The position numbers and the translations under genes are program-made. This document shows positions 25,948 through 33,477 of a DNA stretch of 64,000 bases, in pieces. The notes below the pieces were generated by a model. It was not told the DNA's origin. It made no database searches and saw only the letters and a list, made by a program, of their open reading frames with translations. The stretch lies in assembly GCA_002269645.1 (NCBI GenBank), contig NIVC01000528.1, positions 248,001-312,000 on the forward strand, written 5' to 3'. Position 1 is the stretch's first letter, and each line of letters starts with the position of its first letter. The DNA comes from Macrostomum lignano. Lineage: Eukaryota.

Positions 25948-28900
25948 CTACTCAAAGTCCATCTCCTGCTCAGTGTCCAGCCCGCTGAGCAGCAGGTCCC
26001 GCTCCCGCTGGCAGGCGGCCGCGTACCGGGCGAAGGCCTGGTCGGGCAGCTTGCCCATCGACCGCAGCTCCTCGGCCAGGCGGTGCCGCGCGTCTGGCGG
26101 CTCCGGCAGCAGCCGCGGCCTCAGCAGCGCCGGCAGGAAGGCGCCGGTAAAGTGACTGCGGCGGAGCAGCGCCAGCTCCGTCACAAAGGTCGGCACCCGG
26201 CCGGTTTCAGCGAACTGACGGACGGCCCGGTCCACCTCGGCCAGCGCCTGCTCGGTCACCGGCAAGGAGCTCGAGTCCGCCTCTGAGGGCTGTGGGGGGG
26301 GGGGCTGCGGCCGTCTGCCTGTCTGTCTCTGTCTGTCTGTCTGTCTGTCTGTCTGTCTGTCTGTCTGTCTGTCTGTCTGTCTCTGTCTGTCTGTCTGTCT
26401 GTCTGTCTGTCTCTGTCTGTCTGTCTGTCTGTCTGTCTGTCTGTCTGTCTGTCTGTCTGTCTGTCTGTCTGTCTGTCTGTCTGTCTGTCTGTCTGTCTGT
26501 CTGTCTGTCTGTCTCTGTCTGTCTGTCTGTCTGTCTGTCAGAGTGTCTGTCTGTCTGTCTGTCTGTCTGTCTGTCTGTCTGTCTGTCTGTTTGTCTGTCT
26601 GTCTGTCTGTCTGTCTGTCTGTCTGTCTGTCTGTCTGTCTGTCTGTCTGTCTGTCTGTCTGTCTGTCTGTCTGTCTGTCTGTCTGTCTGTCTGTCTGTCT
26701 GTCTGTCTGTCTTAGTGTCTGTCTTAGTGTCTTAGTGTCTGTCTGTCTGTCTCTGTCTGTCTGTCTGTCTGTCTGCCTGCCTGTCTGTCTCTGTCTCTGA
26801 CTCTGTCTGTCTGTCTGTCTGTCTGTCTGTCTGTCTGTCTGTCTGTCTGTCTGTCTGTCTGTCTGTCTGTCTGTCTCTGTCTGTCTGTCTGTCTGTCTGT
26901 CTGTCTGTCTGTCTGTCTGTCTGTCTGTCTGTCTGTCTGTCTGTCTCTGTCTGTCTGTCTGTCTGTCTGTCTGTCTGTCTGTCTGTCTGTCTCTGTTTGT
27001 CTGTCCATCCATCCATCCGCCCATCCGCAATCTCACCGCAATCACTCGAACCCTGGCCCTGGCAGCCTGAGCGTACGCATCGAACATCTCTTTAACGCAG
27101 AAGTGCGCGGACACCGGCGGATGGTTGACCTGCGCCAGCAGGGCCTGAGCCGAGTTGTCGAACTCCAGGCTGGCAAAATAGACGCTGAGCAGCAGGCTGA
27201 GGGATTTCTTTGAGCTGTTTGGATTAAAAGAAACAAAAAGAATTCAATGCCGTCTCGAACAACGTGTTTGTGAAAAAAAGGCTGATATCTAGCTCTCTAT
27301 TCCATCGTAACACTCTAACCTACCCTATCTACCTACCCTCCAACTCCTACCTCCACCTCTCCACCCTATCCCTCCACCTCTCAACTCTACACCTTCCACC
27401 TCTTCACCCTACTCCCTACACCTCTTCACCTCACCCTACTCTCCAACCTCTCAACCCTACTCTCCAACCTCTCAACCCTACTCCCCAACCTCTCAACCCT
27501 ACTCTCCAACCTCTCAACCCTACTCTACAACCTCTCAACCCTACTCTCCAACCTCTCAACCCTACTCTCCAACCTCTCAACCCTACTCTCCAACCTCTCA
27601 ACCCTACTCTCCAACCTCTCAACCCTACTCTCCAACCTCTCAACCCTACTCTCCAACCTCTCAACCCTACTCCCCAACCTCTCAACCCTACTCTCCAACC
27701 TCTCAACCCTACTCTACAACCTCTCAACCCTACTCTCCAACCCCTCCACCCTACTCCCGAACCTCTCAACCCTACTCCCCAACCTCTCAACCCTACTCTC
27801 CAACCTCTCAACCCTACTCTCCAACCTCTCAACCCTACTCTCCAACCTCTCAACCCTACTCTCCAACCTCTCAACCCTACTCACCAACCTCTCAACCCTA
27901 CTCCCCAACCTCTCAACCCTACTCTCCAACCCCTCCACCCTACTCTCCAACCCCTCCACCCTACTCCCGAACTTCTCAACCCTACTCCCCAACCCCTCCA
28001 CCCTACTCCCGCCACCTCTCCACCCTGCCCCCTCCGCCCCGCCCTCCCCAGCCTACCGAACCGGGCTGGCCTCCCTGGCGAACTGCCTGCCCAGCCAGTC
28101 GCCGTAGCCGGGCAGTCGCAGCTGTCGGCAGGCCGGGTCCGCGGCGCAGGCGGCCGTCTGGCGGGCCAGAGCGATGGCAGCAAACAGGCGGGGCTGGCTG
28201 TGCTGGTCGAAGGCCGACTGCAGCAACTGGCTGGTCTGGGCTGGGGCGGGGTCATTTATTAGATAATTTGACATGCAAACGGGTTTCAGTCGTTATGCAG
28301 CCAGCAAGGAGGCAATAATTAGTCATGACCAAACCACCGGCCCATGGTTACATACGCGCAACCTCAGGCAGTGTGTACACTCTGTGCTCTCATGAGGTTG
28401 AGACTATTGTGAAGTTCCACGCTCGCCAATTCAAACCCAGCTTAATATTTATTCCATCACCCATTCACTCACTGGGTCATTTACTCACCAATTCACTCTC
28501 TAGGTCATTTACTCACCCATTTACTCACTAGATCATTTACTCACCCATTCACTCACTAGATCATTTACTCACCAATTCACTCACTAGGTCATTTACTCAC
28601 CCATTCACTCACTAGGTAATTCACTCACCCATTCACTCACTCAGTCATTCCCTCACCCATTCACTCACTCACTCTCAGTCACTCACTCGCTCACCCTTAA
28701 TAAAATCACGGAACCACTGAAACGCAATCAGCCCAGTGGCCACCAGCTGCAGGCTGAACTTGTTCAGAGCGCGGCAGTCAGAGGATGAGAAGGCAGCTGA
28801 CAGCGACTGTTGAATGTCTTCCGCGTGAGCGGCTGCCAGGATCTGGGAAACAAAGAGTTGCGGTGTGCATTAGTAGAAGATTATTACAGAGAAAGGCTTT

Positions 28901-31900: not shown

Positions 31901-33477
31901 ATAGATAGATAGATAGATAGATATGATCGATGATAGATAGTTAGATGGATAGATAGATATAATAGATGATAGATAGATATGATTGATAGATAGATAGATA
32001 TGATAGATGATAGATAGTTAGATAGATAAAATAGATAGATAGATAGATATGATAGATGATAGATAGATAGACAGATAGATAGACAGATATGATAGATGAT
32101 AGATAGTTAGATAGATATGATAGATAGATATGATAGATGATAGATAGATATGATAGACAGATATGATAGATAGATATGATAGATGATAGATAGATATGAT
32201 AGACAGATATGATAGATAGATATGATAGATAGATATGATAGATAGATAGATAGATAGATAGATAGATAGATTGATTGATTGATTGATAGATTGATAGATA
32301 GATAGATAGATAGATAGATAGATATGATAGATGATAGATAGTTAGATAGATAAAATAGATAGATAGATAGATAGATAGATAGATAGATAGATAGATAGAT
32401 AGATAGATAGATAGATAGATAGATAGATAGATAGATAGATAGATAGATAGATAGATAGATAGATAGATAGATAGATAGATAGATAGATAGATAGATAGAT
32501 AGATGGATAGATAGTTAGATAGATAGATAGATAGATATAAGTCAGTTTTTTCGATCACCTTCAGCCACGTCAGCCAGGGTGCGGCTGGCGGACTGCTGGC
32601 GCTGCTCCAGCGTCTCCATGACAACCCGTACTGCGGGACTGTTGACCAACTCGGAGTCCAGGTGGGCCGGGGCGCCGGCTGCTTCGGCCAGAGACATCAG
32701 AATCTCTGAAATTTTTATGGAAGCAAATAAAGAAAAATAAATAAGAATTGACTAATGGCGGGTTTTGCTGCGTGGATTCCAGTATCGGTTGACCTTGCAT
32801 TGGAAAGTTCCAGAATCGGTTGACCTTGCAATGGAAAGTTCCAGAATCGATTGACCTTGCAATGGAAAGTTCCAGAATCGATTGACCTTGCAATGGAAAG
32901 TTCCAGAATCGATTGACCTTGCAATGGAAAGTTCCAGAATTGATTGACCTTGCAATGGAAAGTTCCAGAATCGATTGACCTTGCAATGGAAAGTTCCAGA
33001 ATCGGTTGACCTTGCAATGGAAAGTTCCAGAATCGATTGACCTTGCAATGGAAAGTTCCAGAATCGGTTGACCTTGCAATGGAAAGTTCCAGAATTGATT
33101 GACCTTGCAATGGAAAGTTCCAGAATCGATTGACCTTGCAATGGAAAGTTCCAGAATCGGTTGACCTTGCAATGGAAAGTTCCAGAATCGATTGACCTTG
33201 CAATGGAAAGTTCCAGAATCGGTTGACCTTGCAATGGAAAGTTCCAGAATTGATTGACCATTCCGTGGAAAATTACGGAACAAACCAATATTGTCGCAGA
33301 AAGTTATGAGTAGCTGCTTAACAATAGAAGGCAAAATAACTCTGTGCCCTCTAAATTGGCCTTAAATTTGACCCCGAAAAAAATATGAGATCCCTCACCG
33401 GCAAGATCTGAGCAGTCCTTCTCTGAAAGTTGCTGCACTTTTAACAGCGACAGCAGCCGCTGCGCCTGAGAAGCCAT
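25948..33477 (-). CDS. FANCA: FANCA-like protein, ~447 aa, covering only the N-terminal/middle part of FANCA; exons 33477-33399, 32705-32559, 31050-30785, 28842-28695, 28240-28057, 27214-27037, 26289-25948
   Basis: Collinear matches to recalled human FANCA: WSHCRMNPL (WSFARTHPL), [25 protein letters not shown]...YGDWLGRQF ([25 protein letters not shown]...YADWFKASF), SKKSL...HPP (SKKAL...HPP), [54 protein letters not shown] ([54 protein letters not shown]). All six introns are GT-AG and phase-compatible. Confidence 0.85.
26316..27004 (-). repeat. (GACA)n microsatellite in FANCA intron 6 (TGTC on +)
   Basis: Direct inspection. Confidence 0.97.
27430..28010 (-). repeat. 21-bp minisatellite in FANCA intron 5 (+ strand CTCTCCAACCTCTCAACCCTA)
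   Basis: About 27 units. Confidence 0.95.
28455..28690 (-). repeat. 28-bp GTGAGT-rich repeat adjoining the FANCA exon 4 donor
   Basis: Minus strand reads GTGAGTGAATGGGTGAGTAAATGA(C/T)CTA in tandem, starting at the donor. Confidence 0.85.
29015..30775 (-). repeat. 14-bp satellite in FANCA intron 3 (+ strand CACACTGTCAGTCA), about 125 units
   Basis: Direct inspection. Confidence 0.97.
31292..32537. repeat. Compound (GATA)n microsatellite with an internal ~580-bp duplication (FANCA intron 2)
   Basis: The unique variant string gatatgatcgatgatagatagttagatgg occurs at ~31342 and ~31920. Confidence 0.95.
32780..33260. repeat. 31-bp minisatellite in FANCA intron 1 (TTGACCTTGCAATGGAAAGTTCCAGAATCGA)
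   Basis: About 15 units. Confidence 0.95.

Follow-up and report, generated by a model that had tools for sequence, protein, structure and literature searches.

In Fanconi anaemia (FA) the gene most frequently mutated is FANCA, and the roles of its N-terminal and middle domains are poorly understood since structural and patient data centre on the C-terminal arc. In Xenopus FANCA a helical subdomain (residues 530-619) is followed by arcN (632-900) and arcC (901-1403), and it is through the arc that the protein dimerises and that the C-terminal domain of FANCG is bound (PMC7102982). Human FANCA in the core complex contacts FANCG with residues 19-67, after which come an N-terminal domain, a middle domain (MD) that is small and helical, and a C-terminal domain (bioRxiv 10.1101/854158). 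Drosophila and C. elegans keep FANCL, FANCM, FANCD2 and FANCI but have no known FANCA, FANCG or FANCB, among others (in part PMC3173227). Here we describe a FANCA-derived gene of 447 codons on the minus strand of a 64-kb window (the whole stretch of DNA that was analysed: 64,000 nucleotides, positions 248,001 to 312,000 of contig NIVC01000528.1 in assembly GCA_002269645.1) from Macrostomum lignano, a macrostomorph flatworm; adding 248,000 to a window coordinate gives the scaffold position, and a 21.5-kb part of the scaffold was compared with the window and is identical. A sequence-only reading of this DNA had proposed a miniature FANCA in an invertebrate, probably a flatworm, and was right on both family and organism. 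The 447-aa product is a FANCA homologue, the match being far beyond chance, and it comprises the best-conserved block of the family but ends before the arc.

In the spliced protein the whole of the Pfam FANCA_helical profile (PF24781) was matched by residues 347-427 (profile positions 2-82 of 82; E = 1.5e-22, 80.2 bits against a cut-off of 28), and Fanconi_A_N (PF15865) was matched by residues 143-330 (E = 9.6e-13, 48.7 bits against a gathering cut-off of 27), this second match covering profile positions 171-349 of 355 only. A profile built from 49 full-length FANCA proteins aligned residues 142-445 with its positions 282-586 of 1361 (E = 1.5e-54), and in a phmmer search of the PDB sequences the product matched residues 345-627 of human FANCA (7kzp_A) and 345-629 of Xenopus FANCA (6lhs_B), with E ~4e-20. 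HMMER, run exhaustively over 1.84 billion representative proteins, gave 123 matches, all of them FANCA-type and aligned over their residues ~345-640; most are 1250-1500 aa long, and the ones looked up by name were either FANCA or homologues without a name, the sources being animals, a sponge and an amoebozoan. AlphaFold2, using a 57-sequence alignment, predicted an all alpha-helical fold (predicted local distance difference test score, pLDDT, 84.6; predicted template modelling score, pTM, 0.72), for which Foldseek against the PDB gave E-values below 1e-3 only with the two chains of human FANCA in 7KZP. The flatworm protein preserves the FLPALLxPRxLPxxPD motif of the helical domain intact, and 61 of the 76 best-conserved FANCA columns (at least 80% conserved among 56 homologues) fall in the block that it retains. 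The range of human residues to which the product had been aligned by eye, roughly 250-630, becomes ~345-640, because residues 1-141 have no detectable FANCA similarity and the portion of that range N-terminal of ~345 therefore falls away. A profile search of the spliced protein, also proposed at the outset, succeeded for Fanconi_A_N but not for the C-terminal Fanconi_A part, the open reading frame (ORF) stopping at profile position 586 of 1361.

The gene model was built by listing the candidate GT donor and AG acceptor sites next to seven GC-rich blocks of the minus strand. This gave a single model of exactly 447 aa, with seven exons running from 33477 to 25948 (-), and so reproduced the structure first proposed. 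Exon 1 (33399..33477; 79 nt) opens with the ATG at 33477-33475, encodes residues 1-26 plus 1 nt and ends at the donor GTGAGG; exon 2 (32559..32705; 147 nt) lies between the acceptor TTTCAG and the donor GTGATC; and detectable FANCA homology starts in exon 3 (30785..31050; 266 nt), at residue 142. Exon 4 (28695..28842; 148 nt) is followed by a phase 1 intron in codon 214, exon 5 (28057..28240; 184 nt; donor GTAGGC) by a phase 2 intron in codon 275, and exon 6 (27037..27214; 178 nt) by a phase 0 intron after codon 334. The whole helical middle domain lies in exon 7 (25948..26289; 342 nt), where the FANCA_helical coding sequence (26011..26253, -), equivalent to residues 530-619 (the helical subdomain) in Xenopus and to the 'MD' in the human structure, is followed by a 10-residue acidic tail and the stop codon. 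The six introns all have GT..AG borders, and no stop interrupts the 1344-nt ORF in its seven exons until it terminates in ...EMDFE-TAG (TAG at 25950-25948). The coding sequence has a GC content of 0.81 at third codon positions (GC3) and 0.49 at second positions (GC2), the GC3 of the neighbouring permease gene being 0.80, and its exons are GC-rich islands with sharp composition boundaries to the introns. Each of the six introns (window 26313-33259) consists mostly of one tandem repeat of its own, with periods of 4, 21, 28, 14, 4 and 31 nt and lengths of up to 1.8 kb. Intron 6 (26290-27036, -) is a 747-nt (GTCT)n array which contains no stop and continues the frame of exons 6 and 7 (ORF 25948..27114), and its retention would add ~249 residues of (TDRQ)n with the frame kept.

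The position of the introns bears on the descent of the locus. FANCA exons of the clam Mercenaria mercenaria (XP_053402861.1, 1382 aa) and the annelid Owenia fusiformis (1386 aa), the closest phylogenetic comparators, were mapped on their genomic loci and projected onto the alignment with the flatworm protein; these two were taken in place of decapod genes, which are almost intronless. Three of the four flatworm introns in the alignable region are common to both species in column and phase: the phase 0 intron after codon 164, that in codon 214 (Mercenaria 399 and Owenia 406, both phase 1) and that after codon 334 (Mercenaria 513 and Owenia 520, both phase 0). The fourth, in codon 275, has no counterpart in either. 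Since three ancestral introns are kept, the locus descends from an intron-bearing FANCA and is a true FANCA orthologue, not a retrocopy. At least five introns common to clam and annelid (clam 326, 444, 481, 531 and 622) are missing from the flatworm gene, whose exon 7 is a fusion of four to five clam/annelid exons. Among the decapod-type genes, Halocaridina rubra has residues 137-1342 in one exon, and a 1183-aa FANCA homologue on an ENA metagenome contig is wholly intronless.

The same comparison locates the end of the gene. Just past the helical domain, in both Mercenaria and Owenia, a phase 1 intron splits the Gly codon of 'LL(E/Q)|GVF'; it is lost in the flatworm, where exon 7 extends into the next ancestral exon by 10 codons before it ends, and its acidic tail aligns with the acidic start of that exon in the two spiralians (GVFIDSETDDEMDL and GVFSDEADESMEEL). 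The alignment thus puts the break within an ancestral exon, at the linker that joins the helical subdomain to arcN. Beyond this point the clam and annelid proteins continue for ~745-750 residues, with arcN (PF24783) detected, and they are ~190 residues longer at the N-terminus. With the vertebrate proteins (human, 1455 aa, 7KZP; Xenopus laevis, 6LHS/6LHU) the flatworm protein shares the segment 142-445, aligned without large gaps to ~345-629, but at about one-third of their length it lacks arcN and arcC, which together provide the dimer interface and the FANCG C-terminal site, and also the N-terminal FANCG-binding segment. No sequence resembling arcN or arcC (Fanconi_A, PF03511) was found in the ORF or elsewhere in the 64 kb, and the segment that binds FANCG and holds the nuclear localisation signal (human 19-67) is not recognisable by sequence in residues 1-141, with no coding exon upstream. 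We infer that the flatworm protein cannot form the canonical FANCA dimer/FANCG/FAAP20 module. In this M. lignano would resemble Drosophila and C. elegans, in whose reduced FA pathways a vertebrate-type FANCA-FANCG-FAAP20 module is impossible, although those two have no FANCA gene at all whilst M. lignano keeps a FANCA-derived ORF.

Little room for further exons had been expected at this locus, and its neighbours, poly(A) signals and composition do confine it to about 447 codons. Downstream lies a convergent cyclic-nucleotide-gated (CNG) channel gene (18372..25533, +; Ion_trans and cNMP_binding domains), whose TGA (25531-25533) is, as noted at the outset, exactly 415 bp from the FANCA TAG. The poly(A) signals of both genes sit within this gap, that of the channel gene (AATAAA) at 25629 and that of FANCA (AATAAA, 25653..25658, -) 290 nt past its stop in an AT-rich 3' region; GC falls to 0.36 right after the TAG, where coding-type composition ends. 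When the 49-FANCA profile was run against every stop-to-stop ORF in six frames of the window only exons 5-7 were found (exon 5 at profile positions 354-404, E = 9e-5; exon 7 at 480-586, E = 2e-33), and neither this search nor tblastn with all hits gave any match in the window to profile positions 600-1361. Because the C-terminal domain of FANCA is poorly conserved a general scan for coding-type ORFs was added: no unexplained GC3-rich minus-strand ORF was found in positions 1-25947, where only the calpain gene qualifies. Two weak profile matches were considered as downstream exons and rejected, 12751-13320 (-; E = 1.2) being a translated tandem repeat and 23420-24148 (-; 0.1 bits) antisense to a CNG exon. 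Self-BLAST of the 414-bp 3' region revealed no dispersed repeat as a sign of a break caused by a transposon.

The sequence-only reading had offered the short protein as a possible ancestral core module, an idea that does not survive comparison with other animals. Full-length FANCA (~1250-1460 aa) was found in an annelid, bivalves, decapods, orthopterans, ticks, a crinoid, a sea urchin, a jellyfish and vertebrates, and the presence of the full-length protein with its C-terminal arc from annelid to jellyfish makes the short form a secondary truncation; the M. lignano FANCA is, on this distribution, derived and not ancestral. Shorter homologues, possibly incomplete, occur in the sponge (794-815 aa) and the amoebozoan (574 aa). 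One 90%-identity cluster with a jellyfish FANCA in it also contains 37-52-aa bacterial 'ribosomal protein S6' fragments, evidently a clustering artefact.

A comparable short form is present in araneoid spiders, whose FANCA homologues are 440-508 aa long: five RefSeq isoforms (X1-X5, 499-508 aa) in Parasteatoda tepidariorum, 492 aa in Oedothorax, 446 aa in Araneus and a 440-aa ORF on the Logan RNA contig SRR7472199_14189, which has spider proteins as its closest relatives and is complete, with in-frame stops upstream of the ATG and AATAAA at the 3' end. These proteins span profile positions from ~83-164 to 578-585 of 1361 and their ends fall in, or directly past, the acidic linker that follows the helical domain, as does that of the flatworm protein (586). 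The Parasteatoda locus (95 kb; CM092286.1, 89.42-89.51 Mb) contains no arc-like exon, the next gene lying 7.6 kb downstream, and in lacking such exons it again agrees with the flatworm locus. The two differ in that the spiders have kept the 'LLxG' intron and, behind it, a short last exon, and in that the spider N-terminal regions can be aligned to FANCA whereas that of the flatworm cannot. Ticks keep a long FANCA, and the best matches of the flatworm protein among the 123 are not spiders. With ticks and other arthropods long, the best flatworm matches elsewhere and the 'LLxG' intron kept in spiders, the cuts would be independent, so that this FANCA cut seems to have arisen on two or more occasions, giving a like architecture without common descent. 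That the spider proteins end at the same linker implies that the retained block may work alone, and suggests that the N-terminal and middle block can be retained on its own.

At the 5' end, an acceptor TTTTCCAG (33484..33491, -) lies 6 nt upstream of the ATG, and both this site and the string GA|GTAGGG over the stop codon (25946..25953, -) are present as first described. Each had been named as a possible route to a longer protein. No coding exon precedes the acceptor before the permease gene, however: the interval from permease to ATG consists only of AT-rich sequence and a C/T-rich minisatellite, and it contains no ORF with coding-type GC3. The published trans-splice motif of M. lignano is [T/C]TNCAG, and its 35-nt spliced leader (SL) ends in ATG (PMC8629364). 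The sequence TTCCAG|CGCCTCATG fits this motif, and the leader ATG would be in frame, adding M-R-L. The distance to the upstream gene after subtraction of repeats (~1.5 kb) is above the 1-kb operon threshold (PMC8629364). The acceptor is probably better explained as an SL trans-splice site than as an entry for upstream coding exons. The only close database relative recovered with the 447-aa protein in a homologue search is a UniRef model of M. lignano, P0001 (621 aa, annotated as AA_permease_C domain-containing), which comes from another assembly and covers FANCA exons 1-3 only. P0001 is a chimera in which the permease is spliced, from a donor 8 codons ahead of its own stop, through the acceptor before the ATG to FANCA exons 1-3 (window 33483-37835, -); exon 1 and its junction recur in it, and it has frameshifted stretches relative to assembly GCA_002269645.1. 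Its alternative exon 2 donor (GAC|GTGGCT) was rejected as it leads to a premature stop in the GCA_002269645.1 assembly. By length, the flatworm N-terminus would match full-length FANCA from about residue 175 onward; a MAFFT pairing of it with FANCA residues ~175-335 was set aside, resting as it does on length and helical character only.

Overall we consider it somewhat more likely than not that the locus is an expressed, secondarily truncated 447-aa FANCA orthologue. Its mRNA would arise by SL trans-splicing at TTCCAG 6 nt before the ATG and be polyadenylated ~300 nt past the TAG, and its product would be a monomeric, all-helical protein providing no canonical FANCA dimer/FANCG/FAAP20 scaffold, which, if functional, would act through a conserved surface underlying the conservation of the retained block. 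Several observations weigh against this interpretation. No FANCA similarity was detected in residues 1-141 (hhalign of residues 1-147 against the FANCA alignment, probability 0.1%); at the 61 conserved columns of the retained block the flatworm residue is identical in 34, and near-invariant FANCA residues are changed (N to R188, P to F293 and F to L376), a pattern that relaxed constraint would fit. No close relative of residues 142-447 was found among ~15 billion predicted proteins, and the gene-call set for assembly GCA_002269645.1 has no model over the FANCA exons. The C-terminal domain is so poorly conserved that Pfam arcN misses it in decapod proteins of 1300-1400 aa. The M. lignano genome is moreover large, repeat-rich and partly duplicated, and the locus search covered the 64-kb window. 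This last point would suit a partial duplicate or split gene, with a full-length FANCA or a separate arc gene elsewhere in M. lignano, as would the coverage of exons 1-3 only by P0001 and the reach of the word-indexed protein searches, which extends to close relatives only (the 447-aa query found P0001 and the 49-FANCA alignment found decapods) and would not have taken in a divergent M. lignano C-terminal domain. Such an arrangement is nevertheless unlikely: a called full-length paralogue would have shown among the 1.84 billion proteins, where none is >50% identical to the conserved block, the neighbouring permease has an exact match on a single contig, the gene keeps three ancestral introns and the GC3 of an ordinary gene, and spiders have this short form too, none of their matches being long.

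The missing gene model and the replaced invariant residues would equally be expected of a decaying relic, that is, a unitary pseudogene, unexpressed or non-functional, whose ORF is open by chance or through recent death; the databases searched hold no transcript-derived protein for the locus, and all known partner-binding regions are lost. Yet a 1344-nt ORF open over seven exons with every splice site canonical, a GC3 equal to that of the permease, sharp exon/intron composition boundaries, the intact FLPALLxPRxLPxxPD motif and a confidently predicted fold make decay quite improbable. An incomplete model or assembly, in which splicing at GA|GTAGGG or elsewhere leads to distant exons or the scaffold is mis-joined after exon 7, would account for a composition shift exactly at the stop, and GTAGGG resembles the exon 5 donor GTAGGC. 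The 26 kb downstream, with its CNG channel, RasGEF-domain and calpain genes, has no arc-like or unexplained coding ORF on the minus strand for such a donor to join, however, and the poly(A) signals of both convergent genes fall within the 415-bp gap. GA|GTAGGG is a possible donor but no relic of an ancestral one, since the conserved intron lies 10 codons upstream and is lost here, and as a route to a full-length protein it finds no support in the window; we regard this explanation as very improbable.

With secondary truncation as the preferred interpretation, the flatworm and, independently, spiders keep precisely the block with 61 of the 76 best-conserved FANCA columns and drop the rest. We put forward, as a tentative and rather doubtful proposal, that this block has been kept at least twice without the dimerising arc and without the FANCG-binding N-terminus, pointing to a core complex built on a monomeric stub or to a function outside the core complex. 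Were this so, the best-conserved part of FANCA would have an unrecognised conserved activity. If the products are functional, the two lineages would represent natural deletion experiments and indicate a conserved role needing neither dimerisation nor the known FANCG/FAAP20 contacts; if a full-length copy exists elsewhere in the genome, the finding shrinks to an unannotated gene fragment. No literature was found on FANCA in flatworms (Macrostomum, planarians) or on short FANCA forms. As M. lignano is tractable by transgenesis and RNA interference and is rich in stem cells, the question is directly testable there.

Upstream of FANCA in the window, and bounding it on that side, is the amino-acid permease gene, a single exon of 500 aa (36333..37835, -); it ends in a stop of its own, and an AATAAA lies near 35850. 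Further away are the calpain gene (2100-4340, -; Peptidase_C2, E = 1e-68), the RasGEF-domain gene (9800-11340, +) and further GC3-rich plus-strand exons (13700-16020) to which no family was assigned, none of them FA-related. Within the CNG gene, 18873-19931 (+) is a long ORF of a ~25-residue peptide repeat (…SQGTYSLQGRDLKAHTDSKGE…), either an intronic minisatellite or coding.

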